This document shows, one piece after another, positions 3,119-63,648 of a stretch of DNA of 64,000 nucleotides (position 1 is its first letter; each line of letters opens with the position of its first letter). The DNA is taken from contig OZ176058.1 of NCBI GenBank assembly GCA_964247055.1, forward strand, positions 1,116,001 to 1,180,000, written 5' to 3'. This DNA is from Paragordius varius (taxonomy: Eukaryota > Animalia > Nematomorpha). The position numbers and the translations under genes are program-made. The notes below the pieces were generated by a model. It worked only from the letters and a program-made list of their open reading frames with translations. It was not told the origin of the DNA and made no database searches.

Positions 3119-4341
3119 TGAATGATTTTGTGTTTATAAAACAATTAAACACGTTTAAAGTCTAAATGGATTAAATATCAAATATATACTTTGTAAAATT
3201 GGTGAATTAGAAAATATAAACATTTAAATATTTTTTTAAGTTAAAGTTTAAATTGTTTTTGTTGACAATAATAGTAATAGGCCATATAAAATGTGAAAAT
3301 CAGCTATTTGTAAATATTATTCACTAGGTATGGGGAGATAATATACGGACAAAATGGTAATATCATAAGGACAAAAGATTCTTTTTTAAACGTTAATTTT
3401 TCTGATATAAATATTTAATTACATTTACAAATTATAGAAATTATTGCTTATACAATTATTTTCTCTAATTTTTTTTGTTATTATAAATTATTATTTCAAG
3501 TAAAGAAAAAAAATATTTATTATATTTTACATTTTTACTTTTTTTCCGTATAATTTAAATTTTAGGGACTATTTTAGTTAAAAAATACATTTTCACACTT
3601 AGGTCAAAATTACCAAAATTTTATATTATCCATTTAAAAATGGTCACGTTGCAAAAAACTGCTTTTATTTAAAAACAGGTTTCTATCAAAGGGGATGTGC
3701 TCTTTTTTTTTAATTTTGGGTGGGGTGATAAAAAATTTTTTGCCTTGCAAATTTTTCAAGTCATGGCTTGCTTTTATGTGATAAAAAAAATTTAACATTA
3801 GACGACTTAAAAGCAAGAAAACTGATTCGGAGGTGATAAAAATTACGTGATCAAGTAAAACTTTTACAAAGTGTGGTGAAGGGCACACTTGAAAGATTCT
3901 TTATTTTGGGAACTATTTATAAATGTAATTTAGGCTTTATATATAATTAAAACCTTTGTTAATGATATAATTTTTATTTGATAAATTTTGGCTATTTAAC
4001 TTATAGGTGAATATAAAAGAGGATGAATTAATATAAAAACTCTGTTAATATTTAAAAACACGGCAAATAAAAATATATTCTATATATATCAATTCTATGA
4101 ACCCGCAAAAAATTAATTCTCAAAATATTCTTAAAATTTTTAAATATTAATATTTATAATATTAAATCTTCTTTTAATAAAAGCTAAAGGTTAGTTCACT
4201 AATTTTAACTAATGTAAAGACTTAATCATAAATTTATTTCGAATGTAATTTTGATAATAATAATAATAATATGTTATATTGTATATATATTTGCTGGACT
4301 CCTAACAAAATGAGTGTTGTAAAATAATAGAAAGTGTTTGA

Positions 4342-4832
4342 CACTTGGATGCAGCACATTCTAGTCCTTAGATTCAAATTTGGGTAGATAAATACCCCAG
4401 GCCTGTTTTAAATTAAATTCTTTTAAAAATATGCAAGGAAACCATAACAATATTTTGAACTTATATAGCATTAATAAACCTAAATATATAAAAAAAATTC
4501 AAAAATACTTGATATTACTTATTTTCAGCTAAAACCGAAAGGTAAATATTTAGTTCACGTGACATGTGTGCGATGGTAAAATTAAAAAATAATACAAAAT
4601 AAACCACTTCTTCTATTTATATCAATGTTATATGTGATTTAAATAAAAAATTAGCTTAAATTTTAATTATATTAAATGAACCAGGTATTTTGCAAAAATG
4701 TTTTAAAATAAAAATGGTGTCGAAAAATTTTTTTTAGATATTTTTGCTTCGTTATATAATTTAGGATAGAAGCATAAATTTAAATTGGTACCGTTTCCTT
4801 CAGTAGTTTTTTATAAATATTAAATCAAAGTG
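4342..4832. mobile_element. Non-autonomous DNA transposon, piggyBac-like (CACTT...AAGTG, TTAA flank)
   Basis: Ends CACTTGGAT...TCAAAGTG|TTAA, with an internal GGGTAGATAAATACCCC palindrome. Homologous to 48648-49203 and to elements in the micro-exon gene introns. The superfamily call rests on the termini only. Confidence 0.55.
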
Positions 4833-30914: not shown

Positions 30915-31025
30915 GAACACACTGTACTACTTGATTGGTAAAAACAAATACAGGTGATACATACCTCGTTATTTTAATAAAAAAAGATATAAATACCAAA
31001 ACACTATCTATTATTCATCATTTCA
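30915..31025 (+). promoter_or_regulatory. Core promoter of micro-exon gene copy 1
   Basis: Inverted CCAAT (ATTGG, 30934), E-box CAGGTG (30951), TATAAATA (30988-30995) and an Inr-like TCATT about 30 nt further on. Nearly identical at 56766-56875. Confidence 0.65.
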
Positions 31026-31071
31026 TTTTTAATTTTTATATCATCGAAAATTCAATTCACTACATAATAAT

Positions 31072-34000
31072 ATGGAGCAATCACTTGGTGGAACTATTAA
31101 TTTACGATTTGTGACAATGGCTTGTTTTATTAGTTTGATGATTGCTGCTCTAATATTCCCAATAGAAGTGAATAGCTGTATGCATTAAACATCTTTTACT
31201 ATGATTGAATTTATCAATTTTTTTTAAATTTTTGTTAATATACAGTAAAAAATTAAAATTATACGGACAAAACGTAAAAATATAAAGACAAATATTTTTA
31301 TTTAAATACAACCACACTTTTTAAAACTTAATTTTTCTAAATATAACTTATTGTTTCAATATATAAAGTATGAAATAGAGATGTTTATTAGTAACACAAT
31401 CCATTATATAATTTGCAGTTCAAAACAATCAGATACATTAAAATGATACTATATTTAAAAAGGTAGTCTTTTAGAAAAAGATATTTGTCCTTATATTTTT
31501 ACGTTTGATTTTAAATTTAATTTAAAAACTTCTGATGATGCCATTGGGAGAACATTTGAGTTTTTAATAAAAAACCTATTTTTATTTCTTACATTATTCA
31601 CACGACGTTAATACGAATGTTATTTAACAACCCTTCGTCGTCACCCACACAAAATTATATGCTATTTGTTTATACTTTTTTAGGCCCATCGTATGGTAAG
31701 TGTAATCCAATTATCATTTACACTTCTAATTCACCCTAAAATAATTTATTTATAAGTTTTCTTAAATTTCAAATTATCTATATTTTTTATGCGAAATTTT
31801 GTTTAAAATTAAAATAATACTGAAAAAATCATAAACTAAGCTGGGGGTGAATTTGAATCGTTCAAGAGTTATTTGAATTCAAGGGTAAATTTAAATTGTA
31901 AATGATATATGTTAGATAAATATATTTTTTCTAGGTAGAGGAGGGCAACCTGGTAGGCCTGGACAGCCTGGTAGAATTTATATTTTGCAAATATTTTACA
32001 CTTTTTTTTATTGAAAATTAATTAAAATTATTTTTACTAACACTAACCCTAATAATTAGTAGAATTTACGTAAAATTTATATATATAGTAAACACGGCCT
32101 AATATTAATGTTGGTGATTGGCTTAATACAGTAGTGTATTGGTAAAAACAACAAGAAATAGTTGAAATTAATCAATTTTTCTCATCTAACAGCGTTTCTA
32201 AGGTTGATTGATTATTTAGTTTTATGGACTAAATTAGTTTCAAATATACCCTACTGTATTATACCATTTGAACAACAATAAAGTGAATTGGCTAGCTTAA
32301 ACATGCACATACTGTAGGCTCAATTATATAATCGATAAAACATATACTATAAAACAGTGCACAAATTATATAAGAATGATTCTCCTGGGGCTTTTAGACT
32401 TGAGCCTTACGAGTTAGTTAAGAAAGATATTTTATTTTTATGGCTGCTCCCTATGAAAGATCGCAAAATTGGTCCAGAATTAATATTGTGGTAAAGGTTA
32501 AGAACTTAATTTTTTCATATAAATATCTGAAGTTGAAAATCAAAACAGTAATTATATTTCAGAAAGTTAAATTTGGCTGAAATCTTTTTAATACAAAAAA
32601 ACTGAAATTATACGGATAAAACGAAAAATATAAAGACAAATATTTTATTCTAAAAGACCCATACTTTTTAAATTTAGATTATATCAACAAAGCTCATTGT
32701 TATAAAAGTGTCAAATAGAGTATATAATACTACACAATCAATTCTATATTTTACAATTGTAACTTAATAGTAGCTTATATGAGAAAAATTAAGGTTTTGA
32801 AAGTATGGGGTTGTCTTTTAGAAAAAGATATTTGTCTTTACATTTTTACGTTTTGTCCATATAATATCGATTTTTACTGTATATGGTATTTGGATTATGG
32901 TGTGAGGGTTTAAAAATACGCTAACATATCATAATTATGCTTTAAGTAAATTTGTAAAAACTCCGCTATTCACATTAAATTTGGAAACGAACGAAATTAC
33001 AGTAAAAACTAATTTTACGGACAAAACGAAACATATAAAGACAAATATAAAGACAGCCATAGTTTTTTAAAACTTATTTTATGCTATATAAATACTATTA
33101 AATTAAAATTGTAAATTATATAATTGATTCTATTACCAATGATACTATATTCCATACTATGCAATTTAAAACAATGAGTTGTATTGAAATAATTCAAGTT
33201 TACAAAAGTATCATTGTCTTTTAGAAAAAGATATTTGTTTTCGCATTTTTATGTTTTGTCCGTAATATTTCAATATTTACTGTAATTTATAATATAAATT
33301 AATTTATTATTATTAGGTGGTGGGCGAAGAATAGGAGGGCAACCTGGACGACCCGGACAGCCTGGTATATCTTAAACATTCTTTCAATCTAAAATATGGT
33401 CAACTTTTATACATGTTACAAATAACCCTTAAAACTCTTTCTGATTAACAAAGAAACTAAATCATTATATAAATACGAAAAAAAATCGTTATTTTTTAAT
33501 TTTATTTATTTTAATTCTCATTATTGCAATGTAGAAATACCATTTAACATAATATATTTTAATTTTAGGTGGATATGCCTATAGTAAGGACGCCATTTTT
33601 ATTTTACAACATTTTTGCAAAATATCGTGTTTATTTGATTCTAAGGCTGAAATTAAGTCACTTTTTATTAAAATCGGCTAATGCACACATCTCATGTTGA
33701 CTAAATTTTTACCTTTAAGTTTTACCTTAAAATAAGTAACATCAAGAATTTTTGACATTTTTATATATTTTGGTTAATTAATGTTGTAAAAGTGGAAAAT
33801 TTTGCCATAGTTTAAATTTATTACATATTTTTGATATTTTAATCTTAAAACCTGGGGTATCTAACGACCCTAATTTGAATCGAAGGACTGAAATGAATGT
33901 ATTGTATTCGAGTGTTGATTTACTTTTAAAATTTTAAATATTTTTTTATTGAATTCGTTGTTAGTATGAATATAATAAGACAAAAATAAAAAATACCAAT

Positions 34001-37000
34001 TTTTTAAGGTATTCACGGACAACCCGGAGAGCCTGGACAGCCGGGTAATTTATAACTTTTTATTTTAAAAAAACACAAGATATACATAAAAAGTAGATAA
34101 TGCCAAAAAAATTTATACTAAAATTGAAATTATACGGACAAAATATAAAAATATTAAAATAAATATTTTTTTCTACAAGACAATACTTTTTAAAACTTAT
34201 TTTTTGCTATATAAATATCATTAAATTAATATTGTAAAATATATAATTGTTTCTATTACCAATGACACTCTATTTCATACTATGCAATTTCAAACAATGA
34301 GAGTTTTATTGAAATAATTCAAGTTTACAAAAGTATGATTGTCTTTTAGAAAAAAACATTTGTCCATATATTTTTCGTTTTAATCCGTATAATTTCAATA
34401 TTTCTGTAATTTGTAGAATAGATTATAATATATTTAACTATTAGGTGGTGGGCCAAGAATAGGAGGGCAACCTGGACGGCCCGGACAGCCTGGTATATCT
34501 TAAACATTATTTCAATCTAAAATAATATGGTCAACTTTTTTTACATATGTTAAAAATAACCCTTAAAACTCTTTCTGATTAACAAAGAAACTAAATCATT
34601 ATATAAATACGAGAAAGAAATGGTTACTATTTTAATTTTATATATTTTAATCTAAAACAGCTATCTAATCATTATTCCAGTGCAATATAATTTAATGTAA
34701 TTTATTTTATTTTAGGTGGATATGTCTATGGTAAGCGTATGCAATACATTTTCTAAAGCTGTATATATATTTATTTTAACAATGTATACCTTATATTAAA
34801 ATTTAACTTATAAAAAGACAAAATTGAATTTTTTTCGAAAAAAACATTACTCGTGATCACCGGTTAATTCAATTTTTAATGGGGGTATCTAAATACCCCT
34901 AAGTTGATATTTAAAAACTACTGAAAGAACGGTTTCAATCCAAAATTATACTTCTATCCTAATAAAAATTATACTAAAAAGCCAAAATAACTTAATAAAA
35001 TTTAGTTTTAAAAAAAATTCAGTACCAAACAGCTTCGACGGCATTTTTATTTTACAACATTTTTCAAAAATATCGTGTTTATTAGATTAGGCTAAAAAGA
35101 GTTTAACTTTTGATTAAAATCACATAACATTAAGATAATCACATTATTTTTATATTTAGCTAATTCACACATCTCATGTTAGCTAAGTTTTTACCTTTGA
35201 GTTGTACTTGTAATATCGTGTGTTTTAAAAATATTTTATATATTAAAGTTAATTAATGTTATAAAAGTGCAAACTTTTACCATGGTTTTAATTTATTCCA
35301 TATTTTTGATTTTTAATCTTAAACTAAGCTGGGGTATCCAACTACCCCATTTTGAATAGAAGGACGGAAATGAATGTATTGTATCCAAGTGTTAAATAGT
35401 TTTAAAACTTTAAATATTCTTTTTAGTAATTCGTTGTTAACATGAATATAATATGACAAAAATAAAATACCATTTTTCAGGTATTCACGGACAACCCGGA
35501 GAGCCTGGACAGCCTGGTAAATCATATTTTTATTTACAAAACGCAAATACATAAAAAGTATATAATCCCAAAAAAATTTATAGATAACGGGTTAATTCGG
35601 TAAACATATTGCATAAACTCGAGGAAACCTATACGGACAAAACGTAAAAATATAAAGACAAATATTTTTTTTTCAAAAGACAATCATACTTTTTTTAAAA
35701 CTTATTTTGTGCTATATAAATACTATTAAATTGAAATTTAAGATATAAAATTGATTCTATTACCAATGACACGCTATTCCATACTATGCAATTTCAAACA
35801 ATGAGTTTTATTGAAATAATTCAAATTTACAAAAATATGATTGCTTCCTTCGATTTTTACGTTTTATCCGTAGAATTTCAATATTTACTGTAATTTGTAA
35901 TCATTATAATATTTTTGAGAACCGATTTTGTACACTCTGCAAGTAGAACGACTTAATCCCGCCTCCTAAAAAACTAATTTTATGCAAAAAATTTCAAATA
36001 AATATATTTTGTAATGTAAAATTTTATTATATTAATTATTAGGTGGTGGGCGAAGAATAGGAGGGCAACCTGGACGACCCGGACAGCCTGGTTTATGTTA
36101 AACATTATTTCAATCTAAAATATGGTCAACTCTTTTACATGTTAAAAATAACCCTTAAAACTCTTTCTGATTAGTAAAGAAACTAAATCATTATATAAAT
36201 ACGAGAAAAAAATCTTTAATATTTTAATTTTATTTATTTTAATCTAAAACAGCTAAAATCTTATCATTATTCCAGTGCAGAAATATAATTTACTGTAATT
36301 TGCTTTAATTTTAGGTGGAAATGTCTATGGTAAGCGTATTTGCAATACATTTTCCTAAGCTGTATATATATATATATATATATATATTTATTTTTAACAA
36401 ATCTAGAGCCTTATATTAAAATTAAAACTATAGGAAATCAAAATATTAATATTTTTTTCGGAAAAAACATTACTCGTGATCACACTTCGATTTTTAATGG
36501 GGTAACTAAATACCCCTAAGTTGATATATAAAAACTACTAAAAAACGGTTTCAATTTAAATTTATGCTTCTATCCTAATATAAATTATTTTAAAAAGCCG
36601 AAATAAATAAAATTGAGTTTTGAAAAAAGTACCGTACCAAACTGCTTCGACGGCATTTTTTTACAACATTTTTGCAAAATATCGTGCTTATTTGTTTGTA
36701 AGGCTAAAAAAGAGTATAGTTTTTTATTAATATGACATTTAACATTAATATAATTACATAATTTCTATATTTAACTATGTTGGCTAAATTTTTATCTTTG
36801 AGTTTTACCTCTGAATAAATATCGTGTGTTTTTTAAATTTTAATATATATCGGTTAATTAATGTTCTAAAAGTGCAAACTTTTACCATGGTTTAAATTAT
36901 TCCATATTTTTGATATTTTATGCTTAAACAAACCTGGGGTATCCAACGACCTAATTTGAATCGAAGGACTGAAATAAATGTATTGTATCCAAGATGTTAA

Positions 37001-40000
37001 ATTAGTTTTAAAATTTTAAGAAATTTTTTTATTTAATTCGTTAACATGAACATAATATGACAAAAATAAGAAACTACTATTTTTTAGGTATTCACGGACA
37101 ACCCGGAGAGCCTGGACAGCCTGGTAAATCATATCTTTTTATTTACAAAACACAAATACATAAAAAGTGTATAATCCCAAAAAAATTAATAGTAAATATT
37201 GCAATTACCGACAAAACGTAAAAATATAAAGACAATATTTTTTTCTATAAGACAATCATACTTTTTTAAACCTTATTTTAAACTATAAAAAACATTTAAT
37301 TAAAATTGTAAAATACACAATTGATTGTATTACCAATGACTCTCTATTCCATCTATGCAATTTCAAACAATGAGAGTTTTATTGAAATAATTCAAATTTA
37401 CAAAAGTATTATTGTCTTTTAGAAAAAAACATTTGTTTTTATATTTTTACGTTTTGTCCGATAATTTCAATATTTACTGTAATTTGTAATTTGAATTAAT
37501 ATATTTATTATTAGGTGGTGGACGAAGAATAGAAGGGCAACCTGGAAGGCCCGGACAGCCAGGTATATGTTAAACATTATTTTAATCTAGAAAAATATGG
37601 TCAACTTTTTTACATGTTAAAAATAACCCTCCAAAACTCTTTCTGATTATCGGAACGAAATTATTTTTTTATTTATTTTAATCCAAAACTGCTAAAGTCT
37701 AATTATTATTCCAGTGCAGAAATATCATTTAAACTAATATGTGTTAAATTTAGGAGGATATGGCTATGGTAAGCGTATTAGCAATTTATTTTTAACAATT
37801 TTAGCGCCTTATAATATAATTAAACTTATAAGAAGTTAAAATAGAAAAATTTTTTTTCGAAAAAACAATACTCGCTGTAAATAACACTTCGATTTAAATT
37901 GGGGTATCTAAATACCCCAGACAATATTTAAGTTGATATTTTTGAAAAACTACTGAAAGAAACGATTATCAATTTAGACTTCTATCCTAATATATTAAAT
38001 ATTTTGAAAAGCCAAAAAAATAAAATTTAATTTTGAAAAAAGAGCCGTACCAAACTGCTTCGACGGCATTTTTTTACAACATTTTTGAAAAATATCGTGT
38101 TAATTTGATTGTAAGGCTAAAATTATGTTTTATTTTTTAATAAATCACATTTAACATTAATAAAAATACATACTTTTTATATTTAACTATGTTGGCTAAA
38201 TTTTTACCTTTGGGTTTTACCTCCGAATAAGTAATATCGTGTGTTTTTGAAATTTTAACATTTCTTTATATTTCGGTTAATTAATGTTATAAAAGCGGAA
38301 AATTTTGCCATAGTTTAAATCTATTCCATATTTTTGATATATTTATGCTTAAACAAACTTGGGGCATTCAACGACCCTAATTTATCGAAGGACTGAAATG
38401 AATATATTCTATCCAAGTGTTAAATTAGTTTTAAAACTTTAAATATTTTTTCATGTAATTCGATGTTAGCATGAATATTATGTGACAAAAATCAAATAAA
38501 TACAATTTTTTAGGCATTCACGGACAACCTGGAGAGCCTGGACAGCCTGGTAAATATATAACTTTTTATTTATTTAAAACATAATATATATATGAAATAA
38601 TTTATATTAAAATAAAATTATACGGACTAAATGATAAAGAAATATTTTTTTTTCAAGACAACCAACTTTGTTAAATTTTTATTTTTAAATAAAACTGATT
38701 GTTTTAAATTGAAAAGTATAAAATAGAAATAAATTGGTAACACAATCAATTATGCGTTTTATGATTTAATTTAAATGATTTTTATAGGATAAATTCAAGG
38801 TTTAAAAAAGTATGGTTTTAGTAAAAATTTAGTTTCTCTTGTTTTCTATATAATAATTTTAATTTTTATTCCAAATATTTAATTTGATAGGATATGATAG
38901 TTATGGAGGATATGGTGGAAGGGGTAATTTTTTACCTACCTATTTTATTTCAATAATTTGTCAAAAATTTCAAATTTTTAACACTCTACAGCAGGGGTCG
39001 GCAACCTAGGCTTGCGAGCCTAGGTTGGCTCGCCGTGGCTTTTACAGTAAAAACTTATTTTATACGGACAAAACGTAAAAATATAAAGATAAATTTTTTT
39101 AAAGACAGTCAGTCATACTTTTTAAATCATGAATTATATCAATGTAACTTTTGTTTAAAATGACGAGTGTAGAATAGAGATATATATATGTTACTAATAC
39201 AATTAATTCTATATTTTACGATTGTAACGAAAAGGCTTACATATGAAAGATTAAGGAAAAGTATGGTGGTATTTTAGAAAAAAATATTTTTATATTTTTA
39301 CGTTTTGTCCGTATAATTCCAATTTTTACTGTATATGGCTCGCGTATAGTCATATGATACTTCATATTTTAGGTTTTTGATTTAAAAGGGGTGCAAAATT
39401 GCTTAATCATAGCCACATTTTCATTATTAAATAGCATGTAATGTTAAATTGTTCTCCATTTTATAAATATACCATTTGCCTTTCAAGATTGCCCTTAAAA
39501 CATGTTAAGTTGGTATTTATACACCTAAAGTTGGTCCTTTAAATTTTTTGTTTTGTTTTAATCTTTTATCAATCAATTCGTGTATTATTCATCTATTTTA
39601 TCATATTTAAACTTTACTTTATTTAACGCAAACTTTAAATCAATATCAATGTATTTCTTTATTAATTTTTAAAAATATTCTAATTTAAATGAGATTTTAA
39701 CAGGTAATCAAAAAATATAAGTTTTTTGGGCTATCAATAACAACTAATCATTTAGAACATTTATGATTCAATAATTTTGTTAAATTGGAAATATTAGTTT
39801 GCACAAAAAGGTGGTTTTTGAATAAAAAAATATTTTTAAGTGAATAAAAAATATATAATAAATTAAGAAATTTAGTTATAATATAATTAATGCATAAATT
39901 ATGGTTAAACTTGAAACTCAAAGGACCATGAAATGTTCGAGGACACTCTTAAAGTGCAAACGGTATTCTATGATATTGACAAATTATACGTGAGGACAAA

Positions 40001-41848
40001 ACATAAAAACATAAAGACAAATATTTTTTTCTAAAAGACAACCCCATACTTTTTAAAACCCTAATTTTTAATATAATTTATTATTTCAAACGATAAAGTA
40101 TGAGATAGAAATGTTTATTGGTAACACAATCCATTATACAATTTGCACAGTTTAAAACAATCAGATATTTTAAAATAATAATTCAAGATTTAAAGGAGTT
40201 GTCTTTTAACAAAAAAAAAATATTTGTCTATATATGTTTTTACGTTTTGTCCATAGTATAATTTCAATTTTTACTGTATATTATTTTAAATACATAACTA
40301 GTAGTTGTTTATAAAAAAATTTATGGACTAAAAGCGTTTATGATGAGTCAACCACAAAGCAATAAAAAAAGCGTAAAATGCAATTTTTATGGAGACTAAC
40401 TTTGACTTTTGAATACTAATTATTTTCACATGTCCTTTTATATATAAATCGCCAAATCATTATAGATCCTAAGCAGCCTGTTAAAACCAAATTTTTTTTG
40501 AAATATGTATCTTAATGTTGTATTTACAGTATGAGTAAGTAAATAAATATTGCTAGAAAGTTATTAATTATTGTCAAATAGTATAAGCAACATTGAAAGA
40601 GAATTATTATTGGCTAATAATAGAGTAAAAAGTGAAAAAAATAACTAAAAGCCAATAATACTGTCCCCTTTGTTGTATATGTTGCTATTTGGTAATAATT
40701 ACAGTCATGTATCCTTTAATTTATCAAAAATTTATTTTTTTCGTTAAATGGGGGTATAAATATTTGGTAAAGAATGGAAAAAACAAGAACTATGGTATTA
40801 ACAATATTTTAACCATCAAAAAGTATAAAAATTACCATAGAGCTCTTGTTTTTTTCCATTCTTTACCAAATATTTATACCCCCATTTAAAGAAAAAAATA
40901 AATTTTTGATAAAATAAAGGATAACATGACTGTAATAACTAGCAACGTATACTTACTCATACTGTATTTTAAAAGTTTTGACTTATACAACATTGGTGTA
41001 ATAAAATATAAAAATATCCAAAATGACCACATATTGTATTTTAGGTTTTTTGAATGCAAAAATTAAAAAAAAATTCTAATTGGATCATGTTTTTTCACTC
41101 CTATTAATAATTATATCATTTAATATGTATTTTTATTTTTATTAATAGGTGGCTATGGGGGTAATTTATTACAATTAAAAATTTAAATAATACTAAAACT
41201 TAACTGATAATTATTTATTAATTTTGAATTGTTATATTTCTGGATGAATTTATCATTGTATACTAAACTTGTTAGTAATTTAAATATTTATTACTATTCT
41301 ATATAGAACAACTTATAATTTTATGATTTAATCAAATATTTTATATCATACTTACTTTAATATAAAGGGAAATACGTAATAATATAAAGACAAATAATTT
41401 TTCTAAAAGACAACAATACTTTTTATATCTAGTTTTATATTAATATAAATCATTGTTTTAAATGGCAAATTCTAAATAGAGATATATAATCCTACAAAAT
41501 CACTTCTATATATTTTAAATTTATTACTAAATAACTTATATGAGAAAAATTAAGTATGGTTGTCTTTTAAAAAAAATATTTGTTTTTATATTTTTACGTT
41601 TTGTCCATAGTATAATTTCAATTTTTACTGTACCTTTGATATATATATATATATATATATTAAACTTGTTAAAACTAAATACTTGTTTTCTATAAAGAAC
41701 AACTTTTAATATTAAAATTTAAACGAATATTTTATTCTAATATTAAGGGAAAAAACGGCAAAGTGTTGATAAATCTAATGTAGGACCTAAAGGACCAGAT
41801 GCAGATATGGTGACAGGAACTATCCCGTTATCTATTGGAAGAAAATAA
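31072..41848 (+). CDS. Secreted Gly/Pro/Gln-rich repeat protein encoded by micro-exons, copy 1 (17 exons; 215 aa, or 200 aa from the second ATG at 31117)
   Basis: Exons: 31072-31177, 31935-31970, 33317-33364, 33569-33583, 34009-34044, 34445-34492, 34716-34730, 35481-35516, 36043-36090, 36315-36329, 37088-37123, 37515-37562, 37754-37768, 38514-38549, 38891-38923, 41149-41160, 41784-41848. All are AG/GT-bounded, and all internal exons are phase 1-1 multiples of 3. Product: MACFISLMIAALIFPIEVNS-CRGGQPGRPGQP-[GGGRRIGGQPGRPGQP-GGYVY-GIHGQPGEPGQP]x4 (with variants)-GYDSYGGYGGR-GGYG-GPKGPDADMVTGTIPLSIGRK*. Confidence 0.85.
34860..38420. mobile_element. piggyBac-like non-autonomous element present once per exon cassette (about 34860-35395, 36480-36995, 37884-38420; partial at 33590-33910)
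   Basis: Left end (T)AACACTTCGATT..GGGGTATCTAAATACCCC and right end GGGGTATCCAACTACCCC..CCAAGTG|TTAA. The orthologous copy is at about 62580-63110. Confidence 0.6.
40527..40964. mobile_element. CAGTATGAG-family MITE with a nested CAGTCATG fold-back MITE (40702-40932)
   Basis: Both TIR pairs are visible, and the inner element is flanked by TA. Confidence 0.85.
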
Positions 41849-44800
41849 ATTATTAGCTGGGGCGATATATATAAATTTTTCATTTTGGATTTATAACTAA
41901 TAGAATCAAATAAATAAATTTAGTATAGAATTTCTTTGCGACGATATATATATATAAATTTTTTATTTTGGGATTTTATGTAACCAAAAACATATAATCA
42001 AAAATATAAATTTAGTGTAGCATTCCTTTTCCGTTTAAATGGGTTAAAATGTTATTTATAAATACCATTTACGATTCTGATTCACTCGCAAACAATTGAG
42101 ATTCACCCTGAAATTGAATTATGTGTTTTTGGGAAGCTAATACTCATCATTATTATGAAATATCTTTATGGGAAATATATTATTTTTTCAATATTATTAT
42201 TTTTTACAAATAGAGTTAATTTTTATCTTAAAAAAACCATAATTTATTTAGGCTGAATTTGTTCATGGTTGATTTTGAATTTCTAAGATATTATATGTTA
42301 AAGTATACCGTTTCCACCATACTTTAAAATACCATAAATACCTAAATTTTGCAATACAATAATTTTTTGAGCAAATATCTATTTTTGAAAATACTTTTTT
42401 GATGTCAAAATTTTATATTTCAGTTTAATCTCAGCTGTTTGTTTGAATTATGCATTATGTCCCAATTTTAGTCTCTAAAGTCACAAAACTATATAACATA
42501 TAAGCTTTTATATCTAATTTGAGAAAAATGTTTGATAATTAATTTTAATTAAAATTACTTTTAAAACAGTATTGTATTTACAAAATTAAGGTAAACTAGG
42601 GCAAAAACGTAAAAGATAATGAAAGTTTTAAAAATATTTGTGTTTTAACTACATCAAATAAAATTTGATTACTAAAAAATCAATGTTGCTTATTACAGTA
42701 AAAATTGAATAAGGACAAAACGTAAAAATATAAAGATAATATTTTTTTTCCAAAAGACAACCATACTTCTTTTAAACTATTTTTTGCTAATTAAAATTGT
42801 AAATAAATTGATTGTATTACCAATGACTTTCTATTCCTTATTATGCAATTTCAAACAATAAGTTTGAAATAATTCAAGTTTACAAAGTATGCTTGTCTTT
42901 TAGAAAAAAATATTTGTCCTTATATTTTTACGTTTTGTCTATATAACTTAAATATATACTCTGTAAGTTGTAATGAGGTATTTTATCATTAATTTAACAA
43001 TTATAATATATTTAATAAAATAGAAATTTTTTATTTTTCTTTAAATTGGTTATATATACAGTAAAAACTTAAATTATACGGATTATTATTAAAACGTTTT
43101 ATTCCCTGTTTTACAAACTCTGAAAGAATTTATCAATAAAATAAAAAATTAAAAAAATTATTTAGCTTTATTTTCCCATGATTTCATTTTTAATAAATTT
43201 ATTATATTTGTTGTTCCAAAATGAAGGCAAAATTGCTGGATTTCGCATAACAATTTTTATTTTTTCCGTATGCACTAGACCACACGGTATCTAAAAATGG
43301 CTTCAAGGGCGGCATTATATATATGTATGGGCTTTCATTCCTAATATAGTATTAAAATTACACAAAGAAAACGGAAAAATAAAAAGAAATATTTTTTTCT
43401 ACATGACAAATTCGTATAAATCATACTATTTGATTGTGTTACCAATATCATATCTATTTTATATGTTGAAATTACCTATAATGTATTAAGTAAATTAATA
43501 TTTAAAAAGTATAGCTGTCATTGAGAAAAAGATATTTGTCTTTACATTTTTGCATTTTGTCCGTATAATTTTTTTAAGCATAAAATTATATTTTTTGTAA
43601 CCTATTCTAAAGACTACAGTACACCCCCCGACCCTCCTCAGAATCAAACTTATTTTTATTATTACACGTTTCTCCGTTTTTAGTAAAAACTGCTTATTAA
43701 GTGTTGATCGTTCGATGAACACAATCGTAAAATTCTGTTAATAAGCTAAAAAAAATAAAATTTAATTATTTTTCAATAATTTTAGAATAAAAATCTGAGT
43801 ATTATTATTTATTTAAACCGGCCTGACCGGATAATATATGCTGTTACTCGCGCTCTGGAATTAATAAATACAATCCCTAAATACATATATTAAAAATAAC
43901 TAAAATGGAATAGACTGATAATATTAATAACAACAAATATTTAATATTTTTTCTATAATATAACATTCACAATTCAAATTCACCCTTAAACAATTAAACA
44001 CCCTCGAACGATTCAAATTCAGCCTCAAATAAAATATATGTTATTTAAGCTTAAAAATTACTATAAAAAATAAAAAAAATTTAAAATAAAATAATAGTAA
44101 AAAAATAATAAACTATGCCATAAAAAATATTTTATATTATTGATGTGTTATATTAGTTTGAAAACACATAATTTTATAGGGCGAATTTGAGTTTGAACTG
44201 TAAATGTAAAATTTGGATCTCATACAATTAGTTTATATATATTCTTCATGGATATAACAGGTTTTCATTTTTGACTTGTTATTTATGAAAGCGGTAAAAA
44301 ATATACATGTATTTGTTTAATTCCATACATAATCTTATTATAAATCTTTCTAAAAGCAACATTTTATAAGAAGGAAAAGGGTAAAAACATGAAGGTGTTT
44401 AATCAATCGATTATTTCAGCAAACTTACGCGAATGTATCTAACTATGTTAATAGAGCCATGTATAAATCTTTTGTAATTCTACATTTTTAATTTGAAATA
44501 AAACTTGGGTGTACAATGGATTGTTAAAGGTTTAGATATCTTATGATTACCGCGTTTTTTGTGATACCATTTGTACCTTTTCCTTAAACGGTAACATATC
44601 ATTATTACACAAATTTTAGTTTAGGTTAATTATGAGTGTACCGTTTTAACGCGAATTGGGCTGAGGTTCAATAAAATAACCCAAAGCACCGAATGAAATG
44701 GATTATATAAAACCTTTTTGATTTGCCAATAATTGAGGCAGAATAAATTTTGTGTATAATAACTTTGATGAATATTTTTATGGTGCGTTCCTACTTCATC

Positions 44801-47125: not shown

Positions 47126-48647
47126 TTTTTTGATAGTTTTTTATTAATGCAATATAAATTAAGTGATTGTTGACATCATGACAAACGCAAGTTCTTTTGA
47201 ATTTGTAAAAGGCATTTATTATGAGCGGGTCGTCTATAATAATGACTGGATAAAAGTCGAACTTGACTTGTAAGTCATGTGTGGCAACTTGAGCAAGTTT
47301 ACCAGTAAATGTACACTTGAAGATCAGTGAAAACACTTAAGTCAAGTCTTTTGCTTATGAATGTAACATTTTTTTGCCATTCGAATTTCACGGTAATTAT
47401 TCTGATCATTTTCAAATTTATGAAATAAGGAATTAAAAGATAAATAATCAATTCAATATGCATTTATTGAAGTAACTTAAACTAGGTGACACGTATCTTA
47501 TTAATATTTTAGATATTAAATATTGAGCTCGTAACTAAAATTTTTAAGTTGATATGAACCCATTCGCCCTAAAAACAATCTATATTATTTTACCACACTA
47601 CTCATTTTGTATAGAGTCCCTTCGCAAATTTAATGGGAAGATGTTAATAGATTATCAACATTCTTATTTGATTATCGAAGTTACATTTTTGAGCTAATGA
47701 TGAAATAAACTCTTTACATGTTTCAATGGTGAAGTAACCTTTATTTATTATTTCATGTAAAACGATTCAAATTTAAAACATGATTATTATTTAATTATTA
47801 ATTTTGGATATTTTCCAGAATCAAATTTTTTGGGGGAATACGGAATTGATATTTACTATATTTTTATATGCATTGTTCTTAAATATTAGCAGAGTTTTCT
47901 AAAATATTCTCTTTTCTATCCTCCCAATTCGAATAGGATTCTGCCAATATCTACCAAATAAACAATTTATATCATTAACAAAGTTTTAATTGCATAAAAA
48001 GCCTAAATTACATACATAAATAGTTTCCAAAATATTTTTCTCCATATTTTTAAATCTGTCAAGCGTGCCCTACACCACACTTAAAAATCTTCATGTTTTA
48101 CTTGATAATATGATTTTTTTAACCTCCGAATCAAGTTTTCTTGCCTAACTTAAATTCTTAATTGTTAATTTTTCTCACATTAAAGCAAGCCATAACTTGG
48201 AAATCTTGCAGGCCAAGTCAAATAAAGTATTTTATTCCCCAACTATTATTATAACACCGTATTAGATCAAATATTTTCAATGTATACATGTATTACAAAG
48301 GATCCCTACGTTTTCCGGAGAATAGTTCCAAAGACAATTTCAGAGATCTATTTTATTTAAAACCTATCACACGGAATGGGAAATAAATGAAAGGATAGAG
48401 GGCTTGAGCATAAAGACATGACAATGAATGAGAAAAAAATGCTTTATTTTAACACTTCTTTACCTTTTCATTTTTTGTAAGAGATTGCATTTTGAGCTAG
48501 TTTTTTTCCCGGGGCTTAAAGCAATAATATTTTGTAAGATGTTCTCATGTATTTGAAAATTGTTTTGTTCGTACTAAAACATGTTTAATACAATTTTGAT
48601 TTATAAATATCAAAATTGACCGGTAAAGCTGAGAGCGTTCTACATCT

Positions 48648-49203
48648 AACACTTGGATACCACACATTCATGTCCTTTTATAGTTAAATACCCAAGAATG
48701 TTTAAAATTAAATACTTTCAAAAAAATGAAAGTAATCGAATCCATGACAAAAGTTTGCAGTTATATAACATTAATAAACTGAAATATAAAAAAATTATTA
48801 AAAAAACTAGATATTACTTATTTTAATGACCCAAAGGTAAAAATTTAGTCAACGTGACATGTGCAATGGTAAAATTGAAAAATAATACAAAATAAACCGC
48901 TTTTTCTATTTCTATCAATGTTAGATGTAATTTAAATAAAAAATTGGCTTAAATTTTGCCCTAAAATTAAATGGAAACGATGTTTTGCAAGAACTTTGTA
49001 TAATAAAAATGGCGTGGAAATAATTTGACATGGAACTTTTTTAAAAACAAAATTTCATTTAGATATTTTGGCATATTTATATAATCTTTATTAGGATAGA
49101 AGCATAGATTTAAATTGGGACCGTTTCCCTTAGTAGTTTTTTAAATATCATAACTCAAATTTAGTCTGGGGTATTTAGATACCCCAATTTGAATCGGAGT
49201 GTT
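48648..49203. mobile_element. piggyBac-like non-autonomous element (same family and orientation as 4342-4832)
   Basis: AACACTTGGATAC...GAATCGGAGTGTTTAA. The internal sequence matches the reverse complement of the intronic elements at 34860-38420. Confidence 0.6.
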
Positions 49204-60566: not shown

Positions 60567-63500
60567 GACATATTTATGCTGCCCCCCTAATGTTATTTTT
60601 GATTAATTGGTGCAATACAGTAGTGTATGGGTAAAAACAATAAGAAGTTGAAATTAAACAATTTTTCCTATCTTACAGCGTTACTAAGGTTGATTGATTA
60701 TTTAGTTTTATGGACAAAATTAGTTTCAAATATACGCAACTGTATTATACCATTTGAACAACAATAAAGTTGATTCGCCAGTCTAAGTGCATACTGTAGG
60801 CTCTAAATATAAAATGGATAAAACGGAAATGAATAGTGCACAAATAATTTATAACTCTTCTGGTGCTTTTAGACTTGAGTTTAAGGAGTCAATTAGGAAA
60901 GATATTTTCTTTTTTTATGGCTACTCTGTATGAAAAATGGCAAAATCGGCCCAGAATTAATATTGTGGTGAAGGAAAAGAACCTCATTTTTTCCATCTTA
61001 TAAATATCTGAAGTAAAAGCCGAGTTATATATTAGAAACTTTTAATTTGGCAGGTGAAAGTCTTTTTAATACAGTAAAATCTGAAATTATACGTATATAA
61101 CGAAAAATAACAAATATTTTTTTCTAAAAGACAATCATACTTTTAAATAAGATTTATATCAATGAAACTCATTGTTTTAAACGGCAAAGTGTGAAATATA
61201 TATAATACTACATCAATTTTATATTTTACAATTGTAATTTAATAACATAGATGAAAAAAATTTAAGTTTACAAAAGATGATTGTCTTTTAGAAAAAAATA
61301 TTTTTCCTTATATTTTTACGTTTTGTCCGCATAATTTTAATTTTTACTGTGCATCGCTAGTTTTAAAACACAAAAGAACTAGCTGAGATTACGAGTTAAA
61401 ATTTTAATGCTTGATAAATAATTAATTAAATCAATACAATTTAAATTTGGCAAAATTTTGTTTAAGTGTATTACAGTAAAAATTAAAATTTTACGGACAA
61501 AACGTAAAATTATGAGACAAAGATTTTTTTTAAAAGACCACCATACTTTTTTTATCTTAATATCTAAAAATGTAACTCATTGTTTAAAAATGTAAATAAT
61601 AAATCAGCGAGGTAACACAATCAATTATGTATACATTAATAAATGATTATAAGAAAAATTCAAGTTTAAAAAAGTATGGTTGTTTTTTGTTAATATATTC
61701 TTACGTTTTGTCTGTATAGTATCGATTTTTACTGTATATGGTATCTGAATTATGGTGTGAGGGTTTAAAAACACGCTAACATATCATAATTATACTTTAA
61801 GTAAATTTGTAAAAACTCCGCTATTCACATTAAATTTGGAGACAAATGAAATTACAGTAGAAACTGAAATTTACGGACTAAACGTTAAAATATAGAAAAT
61901 ATTTTTTTCTAAAAGACAACCATAGTTTTTTAACCTTAATTTATACTATAAAAAACATTTAATTAAAATTAATTCATAATTGATTCTGTTATCAACTACT
62001 GTATATTGCATTTTAAAACAATGAGTTTTATTGAAATAATTCAAGTTTACAAAAGTATGATTGTCTTTTAGAAAAAATTATTTGCCCTTATATTTTTACG
62101 TTTTATCTGTATAATTTAAATATTTACTGTAATTTGTAATATGAATTAATTTATTATTATTAGGTGGTGGGCGAAAAATAGGAGGGCAACCTGGACGGCC
62201 CGGACAGCCTGGTATATGTTAAACATTATTTCAATCTAAAATAATATGGTCAACTTTTTTACATATGTTAAAAATAACCCTTAAAACTCTTTCTGATTAG
62301 CAAAGAAACTAAATCATTATATAAATACGAAAAATAAATCGTTAATATTTTAATTTTATTTATTTTAATCTAAAACAGCTAAAGTCTAATCATTATTCCA
62401 GTGCAGAAATATCATTTAATGTAATTTATTTTAATTTTAGGTGGAAATGTCTATGGTAAGAGTGTAAATTGCGATACATTTTCCAAAGCTGTATATATAT
62501 ATATATATAAATATATATTTATTTATTTTTAACAAGGTTTACCTATATATAAATTAAAACATCCTGACTGTCACCGGCGACCTCTTCGATTTAAATTGGG
62601 GTATCTAAATACCCCTAAGTTTATATTTTTAAAAACTACTAAAAAACGGTTTCGATTTAAAATTATGCTTCTATCCTAATAAAAATTATACTAAAAAGCC
62701 AAAATATTTAAATAAAATTTAGTTTTGAAAAAAAAGGTTCCGTACCAAACTGCTTCGACGGTATTTTTATTTTACAACATTATTGAAAAATATCGTGTTT
62801 ATTTGATTCTAAGGCTAAAATTAAGTTAACTTTTTATTAAAATCACATTTAACATTAATATAAACACATAATTTTTATATTTAACTATGTTGGCTAAATT
62901 TTTACCTTTGATTTTTACCTTAAAATATGTAATATCGTGTGTTTTAAAGTTTGTTTATATTTGGGTTAATTAATATTATAAAAGTGCAAACTTTTGCCAT
63001 GGTTTTAATTTATTCCATATTTTTGATATATTTAATCTTAAACTAACCCTGGGGTATCCAACTACCACAATTTGAATTGAAGGACTGAAATAAATGTATT
63101 GTATCCAAGTGGTTAATTAGTTTTAAAGCTTTAAATATTTTTTTAATGCAATTCGTTGTTAACATGAATATTATATGCCAAAAATAAGAAAATACTATTC
63201 TTTTAGGTATTCACGGACAACCCGGAAAGCCTGAGCCTGGTAAATCTAACTTTTTATTTTTAAAAACAATATTATATACATAAAAAGTATATAATCCCAA
63301 AATAATTTATAAATTGAAATTCTACGGATAAACTGTAAAAACATTAAAATAAATAATTTTTTTACAAGACAATATCATATTTATGAAATATTATTTTTTA
63401 AATAAAACTGATTGTTTTAAACTGAAAAGTATAACATAGAGATGAAATTGTGGTAACACAATCAATTATGCGTTTTATGATTGAATTCAATGATATTTAT

Positions 63501-63648
63501 AGGCTAAATTAAGGTTTGAAAAAGTATGGTTATCTTTTTATAAAAATTTCTTTTAGTTTTTTTTTGAATTTTCTATTATAATTTCAATTTTTACAGTAAA
63601 TATTTAATTTAATAGGATATGATAGTTATGGAGGATATGGTGGAAGGG
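56923..63648 (+). CDS. Micro-exon Gly/Pro/Gln-rich secreted protein, copy 2 (partial; 3' exons beyond the window)
   Basis: Exons: 56923-57028, 58944-58985, 59786-59824, 60365-60400, 62164-62211, 62441-62455, 63207-63239, 63616-63648, all internal ones phase 1-1. Product from the second ATG (56968): MTCLISLMIALLIFPVGVNS-YGSHGGRGGYGGGG-GGGGGVGGQPGQP-GRRGQPGRPGQP-GGGRKIGGQPGRPGQP-GGNVY-GIHGQPGKPEP-GYDSYGGYGGR-... Confidence 0.85.
59517..59684. mobile_element. Short TIR element (TA-CCGTTTGCACTTCAAG ... CTTGAAGTGCAAATG)
   Basis: Inverted termini with internal CTTGAAC repeats. A related right end lies at about 39900-39964. Confidence 0.6.
60514..60563. repeat. (TA)25 microsatellite
   Basis: Direct reading. 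Shorter runs occur at about 9200, 23246, 36362 and 41641. Confidence 0.95.

Follow-up and report, generated by a model that had tools for sequence, protein, structure and literature searches.

The 64,000-nucleotide stretch of Paragordius varius DNA analysed here (the window) contains, on its forward strand, a gene that can be read directly from the sequence as a predicted model spanning 31072-41848 (copy 1), and its product would be a glycine/proline-rich, putatively secreted protein encoded by micro-exons. The predicted first exon (31072-31177) provides a start codon followed by a hydrophobic stretch and ends in a phase-1 donor, while the predicted last exon starts at 41784 and reaches a stop codon at 41846-41848. 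The predicted internal exons of 48, 15, 36 and 33 nt, together with neighbouring 36- and 33-nt exons, are very short, have lengths that are multiples of three, are all of phase 1-1 and are bordered by AG and GT, as expected for a micro-exon gene (MEG). Two paralogues accompany this gene, copy 2 within the window and copy 3 outside it, the latter comprising three cassettes with the same hybrid junction MITE as copy 1 and a second half that is collinear with copy 2 (82.5% over 2.9 kb). Scanning positions 31000-42000 against Rfam returned nothing in the conserved intron 1, and the sole match in that interval, to a plant miRNA family at 40738-40894, was sub-threshold (41.7 bits versus a gathering score of 95).

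Copy 1 holds four tandem units of 1.1-1.6 kb, each with three phase-1 mini-exons and with five MITEs between and around them, whereas copy 2 has only one such cassette between two MITEs. Both pattern searches and alignment confirmed this layout, which the sequence-only reading had described. The cassette composition of 48+15+33 nt given there holds for copy 2 (96 nt; 62164-63239, predicted exons 62164-62211, 62441-62455 and 63207-63239), but in copy 1 exon 3 is 3 nt longer, and the cassette is 48+15+36 nt, that is 99 nt or 33 aa. On the forward strand of copy 1, cassette 1 spans 33317-34044 (predicted exons 33317-33364, 33569-33583 and 34009-34044) and lacks from its intron 2 about 296 nt that are found in every other cassette. 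It is followed by cassette 2 at 34445-35516 (predicted exons 34445-34492, 34716-34730 and 35481-35516), cassette 3 at 36043-37123 (36043-36090, 36315-36329 and 37088-37123) and the most diverged unit, cassette 4, at 37515-38549 (37515-37562, 37754-37768 and 38514-38549).

A single cassette exon codes for only 4-15 whole residues. The cassette exons are symmetric in phase 1, their final base is G and their first bases are G plus one more, representing a split glycine codon, and therefore each unit would lengthen the protein by exactly 33 residues and place a glycine at almost all exon joints. The proposed frame-preserving steps of 33 residues are thus retained, but not their attribution to the MITEs, because any intronic breakpoint would preserve the frame between symmetric phase-1 exons. 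Across the eight cassettes of copies 1-3, which differ pairwise by 11-19%, exons are 94.1% identical compared with 85.1% for introns, which argues that the cassette copies are maintained by selection and lends indirect support to transcription and splicing of the predicted micro-exons.

The consensus of the MITE family, derived from 39 copies, starts with TA followed by CAGT and ends with ACTG followed by TA, in line with a TA target-site duplication, and two of the elements discussed below (M1 and A2) have TA on both sides. The elements are about 285-299 bp long, contain no ORF and possess long terminal inverted repeats (TIRs). A first look at the 110-Mb genome yielded at least 2,600 candidate copies, and the 94 kb examined around the locus contain 39 copies, accounting for approximately 12% of the sequence. 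Judged by the TA duplication, the CAGT ends, the long TIRs and the copy number, this is a Tc1/mariner-type (Stowaway-like) family.

The outermost MITEs of copy 1 occupy the contexts that we call parental, as had been stated before. The upstream parental element, M1 (type A; 33000-33282, forward), has a unique spacer on its left that is 93.9% identical to the spacer before A2 (61855-62129, forward), the upstream parental MITE of copy 2. The downstream parental element, M5 (type B; ~38611-38871, reverse), has a body inverted relative to A and is the counterpart of B2 in copy 2 (63310-63596, reverse, likewise with an inverted body), the two bodies being 93.7% identical. The predicted exon that directly follows M5 (38891-38923, forward) marks the downstream parental context and is found after B2 as well. 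Between the cassettes lie three junction MITEs on the forward strand, namely M2 (34116-34406), M3 (35581-35890) and the best preserved one, M4 (37190-37479), whose single-stranded DNA is predicted to form a hairpin (-58.9 kcal/mol, z -10.6) with about 85 bp paired in its stem. The presence of internal MITEs was correctly recognised in the sequence-only reading, but M3 begins at 35581 and not at 35626, where a recognisable TIR roughly resumes after 43 unrelated nt that replace the outer left TIR; in addition, its right TIR has a 19-nt deletion.

In each internal MITE, the left flank and the whole left TIR belong to the downstream type (B), whereas everything from the body through the right TIR to the right flank belongs to the upstream type (A). 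Alignment with flanks places before them an exon-3 tail and flank otherwise found only before downstream MITEs, and the diagnostic sites read B and then A, which agrees with the earlier proposal that these elements are mosaics of the two parental types. All four complete junction MITEs (M2, M3, M4 and the junction between cassettes a and b of copy 3) carry B-type states from the flank up to family position ~72 and A-type ones beginning at ~99, and the breakpoints thus map inside the MITEs, to the left TIR at family positions ~73-99, as the mosaic model demands. A truncated junction MITE after copy-3 cassette b is B-type throughout its extent, to position ~66. Accordingly, homology of the junction MITEs (J) to M1 begins inside the left TIR, and homology to M5 and B2 ends inside it. 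J and A bodies, compared in the same orientation, are 83-92% identical for most pairs, with values of 72-80% when M3 and the copy-3 junction are compared with the A elements of copies 2 and 3, and the right-TIR signature and right flank of A are common to all J and A elements.

B bodies, on the other hand, align with A and J bodies only as the reverse complement (scores of 38-75 versus 4-15). A and B lie in opposite orientation, and their direct homology is limited to the left TIRs, approximately 85-95 nt. Viewed as a case of non-allelic homologous recombination (NAHR), the locus has repeats at both ends of an unduplicated segment in copy 2 (A2 and B2), the ancestral status of copy 2 aside, and hybrid repeats joined in register at M2, M3, M4 and the copy-3 junction, while the repeats are not direct over their full length, A and B being inverted; the event would either have acted as NAHR across ~90 nt or have been a one-ended or template-switch process. 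In a tree of 39 family members, B2 and M5 form a pair of their own (98/92) apart from the clade of J elements and M1 (99/96), which suggests that B arose by an independent insertion and is not a flipped J; the same supported pair ruled out a junction MITE whose body had been inverted via its own TIRs as the source of B. The body of M1 clusters with those of M2 and M3 and apart from A2 and the A element of copy 3, which occupy the equivalent position in their paralogues, indicating that the MITEs have been homogenised and that the assignment of an A-type body partly rests on a converted reference. An initial tree restricted to A and J bodies does not establish their monophyly, as the three copies assumed to be its outgroup nest inside the J/M1 clade in the larger tree.

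The array is not an assembly artefact, since its units differ by 11-19% and exact contigs of single-copy depth (~215x and ~50x in two samples) lie on several units and boundaries. The public reads were examined as short assembled contigs only, and apparent joints among them were rejected as copy-number alleles, with sides of 20-45 nt (most <35) located in genome-wide repeats and depths unlike those of single-copy sequence. The locus was found in no RNA run.

The history of the cassettes themselves is mosaic. An ML tree of all eight supports none of its five inner branches and amounts to a star, and informative sites and sliding windows demonstrated that the nearest neighbour of a cassette shifts along the unit and often resides in another paralogue. 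The copy-2 cassette is not an outgroup: it is 85.7-87.9% identical to six of the seven other cassettes and 82.7% identical to the divergent cassette 4, compared with 88.6% identity between cassettes 2 and 3 of copy 1. Considering the pairwise differences of 11-19% together with this mosaic, star-like tree, the amplification of the cassettes appears to be old. The view that copy 2 represents the ancestral state was not sustained, given the star tree, the mosaic neighbours in other paralogues and the three cassettes of copy 3. We likewise rejected the cassette phylogeny as proof of an amplification specific to copy 1, in view of the unsupported ML tree, the mosaic sites and a four-taxon test on the upstream context that split 9:8:2. 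An apparent 98% tract shared by the copy-2 cassette and cassette b of copy 3 had pointed to a recent conversion, a claim that was dropped after BLAST at >=93% and >=95% identity found no long tract; all cassettes are conserved in the region concerned, which comprises exon 1 and intron 1.

Further rearrangements at the locus have left three more junctions in MITE TIRs, of which two coincide with the inner edge of a TIR or lie within ~15-20 nt of it. The upstream MITE of copy 1 (32594-32879, reverse) is a chimera that fused, by deletion, the counterparts of two MITEs still separate in copy 2 (61070-61350 and 61471-61737), and its diagnostic sites change from the first type to the second within the last ~25 nt of the right TIR. 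In copy 3, a chimera has its joint at the inner TIR edge, and at another junction a TIR is fused to non-MITE DNA with 2 nt of microhomology, the break lying ~15-20 nt short of the inner edge.

Taken together, we consider it probable that a founding exchange between the left TIR of B and the body of A, followed by unit-to-unit amplification, best explains the locus. Two copies of one Tc1/mariner-type MITE family would have inserted independently and in opposite orientations, A in the intron before a cassette of three micro-exons and B in the intron after it. A homology-directed ectopic exchange would then have linked the A body to the left TIR of B, either as an unequal exchange between sisters or homologues or as a one-ended break-induced or template-switch repair, and would have produced the tandem duplication A-cassette-J-cassette-B, in which J consists of the B flank and left TIR fused to the A body and right TIR. 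Later gains, losses and gene conversion may have proceeded via the homology of whole units (1.1-1.6 kb), with J as a passenger, up to the four units of copy 1. Of the unequal crossing-over between flanking MITEs put forward in the sequence-only reading, a breakpoint in the left TIRs stands, whereas the inverted orientation leaves only ~85-95 nt usable for an exchange. Several observations weigh against the favoured explanation: the parental TIRs are now only ~70-75% alike, 85-95 nt is short for classical crossing-over, and the switch occurs at the innermost limit of the shared sequence, a position that a uniform crossover model would give in only about 1 of 10 cases. With the switch at this limit, a reciprocal crossover fits no better than one-ended or template-switch repair.

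The earlier suggestion that MITEs drive every change in copy number was not upheld: in all junction MITEs, including that of copy 3, the change of type falls into one and the same interval at the inner edge of the TIR, for which one founding exchange is enough. That several or all steps (from one to two, two to three and three to four units, and in copy 3) were separate exchanges between B-type and A-type TIRs seems rather unlikely to us, although the left TIR of M2 has two or three extra derived B states in common with B2 and the copy-3 B-like MITE that are missing from M3, M4 and the junction of copy 3, a possible sign of a second exchange or of conversion. A short conversion tract can account for these states, and after the first duplication, exchange over 1.1-1.6 kb of unit homology should dominate over that across a TIR of ~90 nt; nevertheless, a mechanism that always resolved at the inner edge, as the three other independent TIR junctions might imply, could repeat identical switch intervals. 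More plausible, though still less so than a founding duplication, is a reversed polarity, in which a multi-cassette array predates all three paralogues and the single cassette of copy 2 results from secondary collapse by unequal exchange. The unsupported cassette tree, in which copy 2 is no outgroup, the changing nearest neighbours and the three cassettes and shared junction MITE of copy 3 would all suit this possibility; however, J derives from A and B by construction, so that an A-cassette-B state must once have existed, and its retention, as still seen in copy 2 and in the collinear part of copy 3, is more parsimonious than an exact regain.

We regard it as very improbable that the MITEs are bystanders of a homology-independent tandem duplication, by end joining or replication slippage, whose ends both fell in MITEs by chance. 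The family covers ~12% of the 94 kb examined, and one junction in copy 3 joins a TIR to non-MITE DNA with 2 nt of microhomology, but the junction elements are joined in register, no more than ~27 nt away from equivalent positions and in the one orientation that the homology allows, for which we estimate roughly (0.12 x 0.12 x 0.5 x 27/285) a chance below ~1 in 1000 with random breakpoints, even at the local MITE density. Alternative transposition using the ends of two MITEs, in the manner of Ac/Ds or P-element hybrid insertion, can yield tandem duplications whose junction carries an element, and the CAGT/TA ends of the family look intact. Transposase, however, cuts at element ends, yet the left end of B and the right end of A are still on their original flanks and the new joint lies inside the element, at the border of TIR and body; by this junction anatomy, a transposase-driven origin is close to refuted and hardly credible. 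A doubtful further reading is that long-TIR MITEs of this genome are structure-prone fragile sites, at which hairpin-loop breaks or stalled forks would be repaired from the TIR of another MITE, always leaving the joint at or near the inner edge. Such a reading would fit three joints, namely the B/A junction and the copy-3 chimera at the inner TIR edge and the joint of TIR and unrelated DNA ~15-20 nt short of it. If true, pairs of MITEs, even inverted ones, would be a general and recurrent engine of cassette gain, loss and shuffling in micro-exon genes, which would account for the MITE-filled introns around such genes.

The locus shows no new mechanism, exon duplication mediated by repeats being textbook knowledge. 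Its value lies in recording, at single-base resolution, how a putatively secreted low-complexity protein changed its number of repeats, with both parental transposons, the hybrid elements at the junctions and a paralogue without amplification preserved next to each other, a rarity among old events. Furthermore, it indicates that oppositely oriented MITEs can still make a tandem duplication through their terminal repeats. In human genes, non-allelic recombination between Alu elements causes intragenic exon duplications and deletions and leaves a hybrid repeat at the duplication junction. As in those cases, the homology at our locus comes from interspersed repeats in flanking introns, a hybrid repeat marks the joint and the frame is kept when phases match. 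In contrast to Alu-Alu events, the repeats here are ~285-bp derivatives of DNA transposons in opposite orientation, of which only the TIR (~85-95 nt) pairs directly, the hybrid changes type right where the homology ends, and the event is ancient, fixed and subsequently amplified to four units. Collagen and other Gly-X-Y repeat genes amplify exons by intronic unequal crossing-over, and similarly the glycine-rich repeat number changes here by whole exons whose borders preserve the glycine periodicity. However, classical collagen exons are 54-bp phase-0 units, whereas the exons described here are of phase 1 with a split glycine codon, and the Gly-X-Pro runs of the cassette protein comprise three triplets only, interrupted by Gly/Tyr exons.

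Two further systems also connect mobile elements with duplication. In Drosophila, the MITE-like DNAREP1/DINE-1 elements are located at breakpoints of young duplicated genes and were interpreted as mediating recombination (PMC2211543). Here, too, an abundant, degenerate, non-autonomous DNA element family occurs at both duplication breakpoints, although the Drosophila cases are dispersed duplications of whole or chimeric genes and ours is an intragenic tandem amplification of an exon cassette with a mapped in-register hybrid element. In schistosomes, transposable elements are enriched in MEG loci (PMC4350168; PMC10526429), and one exon duplication in MEG-3 is reported to be tied to a transposable element insertion (PMC4350168, citing DeMarco et al. 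2010; PMC10526429). The predicted gene resembles schistosome MEGs in its many very short symmetric exons with lengths in multiples of three, its long introns and its product, MEG proteins being secreted and this one putatively so; the likeness is one of architecture, with no sequence kinship expected. Beyond the mere proximity of a transposable element, the junction anatomy at our locus shows how the duplication arose, adding a non-flatworm example of a putative micro-exon gene that grows by whole cassettes.

The predicted gene of very short exons forming copy 1 (31072-41848, + strand, from sequence reading) opens with an exon (31072-31177, +) in which a start codon and a hydrophobic stretch are followed by a phase-1 donor, and its last exon begins at 41784 and ends in a stop codon at 41846-41848 (+); the host genome comprises 110 Mb with a G+C content of roughly 25%. 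An old segmental duplication, joining 22.6-39.0 kb and 44.3-63.7 kb of the window at 78-87% identity, produced copies 1 and 2, and a genome search identified three further cassettes of mini-exons on the minus strand ~55-60 kb downstream (C9:1235709-1241058, on the contig of the window; loci L013 and L014), giving four, one and three cassettes for copies 1, 2 and 3, respectively. As the sequence-only reading had described, and essentially where it placed them, four copy-1 cassettes are separated by five MITEs (M1, 33000-33282; M2, 34116-34406; M3, 35581-35890; M4, 37190-37479; M5, ~38611-38871), and the copy-2 cassette is present once, bracketed by A2 (61855-62129) and B2 (63310-63596). A 36-nt exon further upstream (31935-31970) encodes RGGQPGRPGQP, a shortened form of cassette exon 1, indicating that earlier rounds of exon duplication had already built the gene.

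The internal copy-1 MITEs proved to be mosaics of two parental types, the upstream type A (M1, A2) and the downstream type B (M5, B2). Aligned with their flanks, M2, M3 and M4 are preceded by an exon-3 tail and flank found elsewhere only before M5 and B2, and are followed by the flank that also follows M1 and A2. Using as diagnostic sites the positions that separate three A-type from three B-type elements, all four complete junction elements, including the one between copy-3 cassettes a and b (L014:3607-3885, -), which has the same structure, are B-type from the flank to family position ~72, the B markers including the altered end TAGTAAAT, TATACGG for TTTACGG and AATCATAC for ACCATAG, and A-type from ~99 onwards. 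The junction element is therefore the left terminal inverted repeat (TIR) of B joined to the body and right TIR of A, with the switch inside the MITE, at the inner TIR edge. The proposed unequal crossing-over between flanking MITEs thus holds for the position of the breakpoint but needs revision as to the partners: the B2 and M5 bodies align with those of A and of the junction elements in reverse-complement orientation only (scores 38-75 vs 4-15), and a tree built from all 39 copies places B2 and M5 in a pair of their own (98/92), separate from the clade of junction elements and M1 (99/96), so that A and B are independent insertions in opposite orientation and direct homology is confined to their left TIRs. 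In M3, 43 unrelated nt occupy the place of the outer left TIR (35581-35628).

Because the switch interval is identical in M2, M3, M4 and the copy-3 junction MITE, a single founding exchange suffices, and because units of 1.1-1.6 kb far exceed the 90-nt TIR in homology, later gains and losses need no MITEs. We consider it fairly probable that one exchange between the TIRs of B and A would have created the junction type, and that whole units would then have exchanged with each other, MITEs not being required. Recurrent TIR exchange behind several or all copy-number steps appears unlikely given the common switch interval, even though M2 alone carries two or three further derived states that also occur in B2 and in the copy-3 B-like element, suggestive of either another exchange or a conversion tract. 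The idea that MITEs act as recombination handles for repeat number is supported for the founding junction; later steps are explicable by unit-to-unit exchange.

Regarding age and polarity, the eight cassettes are 81-89% identical pairwise, none of the inner branches of their maximum-likelihood tree is supported, both informative sites and sliding windows show a mosaic pattern with the nearest cassette frequently from another paralogue, and a four-taxon test of the upstream context gave a 9:8:2 split. This divergence and mosaicism indicate that the amplification dates from about the time of the gene duplications and that sequence was exchanged among copies afterwards. Since the junction type derives logically from A and B, an A-cassette-B arrangement must have existed at some time; that the single cassette of copy 2 is a secondary collapse rather than this state retained is conceivable, in our view with less than an even chance.

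In copy 1, the four tandem units have periods of 1116, 1465, 1609 and 1421 nt and three exons each of 48, 15 and 36 nt, with exon 3 measuring 33 nt in copy 2. All cassette introns are in phase 1, and the exons end in G (A in one) and start with G followed by T, A or C, so that nearly every joint splits a glycine codon. The copy-1 cassette peptides read, exon by exon, G-GGRRIGGQPGRPGQP, G-GYAY and G-IHGQPGEPGQP, 33 residues in total. The 33-aa steps without a frame break are hence correct as an observation, but the frame is kept by exon symmetry, and a breakpoint anywhere in the introns would also keep it. The cassettes are real and distinct, with pairwise differences of 11-19% and exact contigs that cover several units and their boundaries at single-copy depth in two samples (low depth in two other labels). 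Across the three copies, exons are more alike than alignable intron (94.1% vs 85.1%), which indicates that selection maintains the cassettes. Intron 1 (33365-33568, 34493-34715, 36091-36314, 37563-37753, 62212-62440) is conserved about as well as exons across the eight cassettes, with 91-96% identity in 40-column windows compared to 69-90% in most of intron 2; an Rfam scan of 31000-42000 gave no match in it, and it could contain a signal for splicing of the 15-nt exon or be under some other constraint. Unit 3 carries ~120 extra nt between M3 and exon 1 (35893-36012) that are absent from every other unit.

Three additional joints lie in TIRs. The single upstream MITE of copy 1 (32594-32879) corresponds to a pair in copies 2 and 3, with ~120 bp between its members (61070-61350 and 61471-61737 in copy 2); it is a chimera of both counterparts, switching in the last ~25 nt of the right TIR, and thus the product of a MITE-MITE deletion. 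The MITE before copy-3 cassette a (L014:5072-5361, -) combines flank, left TIR and body of the upstream element with a junction-type right TIR and flank, its partners being mutually inverted and the switch again at the inner TIR edge. Behind cassette b, a lone left TIR, cut at about position 66 (L014:2360-2361; C9:1238360/1238361, -), is joined to unrelated DNA via a 2-nt microhomology, namely to non-MITE upstream context matching copy-2 position 60696. Past this joint copy 3 is collinear with copy 2 (82.5% over 2.9 kb: two upstream MITEs, spacer, A-type MITE, cassette c) and appears to combine an array-bearing part with a copy-2-like one. Cassette b has lost exon 2 by a 13-nt deletion (~L014:3240-3350, -), and the residual 48+36 nt would remain in frame. 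At the B position after cassette c (L013:8095-9722, -), a B-type left TIR is fused to the body of another subfamily, followed by ~1.2 kb of unmatched DNA and a true-B right end beside the downstream exon.

The two joints between inverted partners sit exactly at the inner TIR edge, as one-ended repair or template switching that retains the invading end's TIR in full would produce; a reciprocal crossover would place a joint there only about once in ten events. Taken together, the three additional joints support a more modest claim, namely that rearrangements at this locus occur preferentially in MITE TIRs, in a sample that is targeted, as TIR-located joints were searched for specifically; at least one indel at the locus, the loss of 296 nt from intron 2 of cassette 1, falls outside the TIR type.

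The MITE consensus (39 copies, 94 kb examined) is ~299 bp long with the ends 5' TA|CAGT and 3' ACTG|TA, and M4, folded as single-stranded DNA, forms a hairpin whose stem measures ~85 bp (-58.9 kcal/mol, z -10.6). At least 2,600 candidates occur genome-wide, usually with 78-80% identity to any one copy. Members of the family are concentrated in introns of the micro-exon gene cluster, with 18 copies in 31241-64000 (33 kb) vs none detected in the first 31 kb (1-31000), in part because the paralogues inherited shared insertions. A second repeat of ~520 bp with thousands of genomic candidates is a passenger in intron 2 of every cassette (33589-33880, 34878-35397, 36482-36938, 37883-38425, 62584-63111; also 4331-4829 and 48644-49203); its left part was lost from cassette 1 with the 296-nt deletion, which was not MITE-mediated. 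A match at 40738-40894 to MIR6027, a plant miRNA precursor family, lies below the Rfam threshold (41.7 bits vs a gathering score of 95) and is probably merely another hairpin-forming repeat.

Together, the fourfold cassette is confirmed and its interpretation by MITE exchange is partly supported. For human Alu elements, it is classical that repeats mediate exon duplication and leave a hybrid repeat at the junction, and the cassette array is an unusually legible example of this known type. In Drosophila, MITE-like DNAREP1 elements lie at duplication breakpoints (PMC2211543), and schistosome micro-exon genes are rich in transposable elements, with one MEG-3 exon duplication tied to such an element (PMC4350168). 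Compared to these cases, the array in P. varius has one uncommon feature, namely that the partners are inverted and the terminal repeats alone were used.
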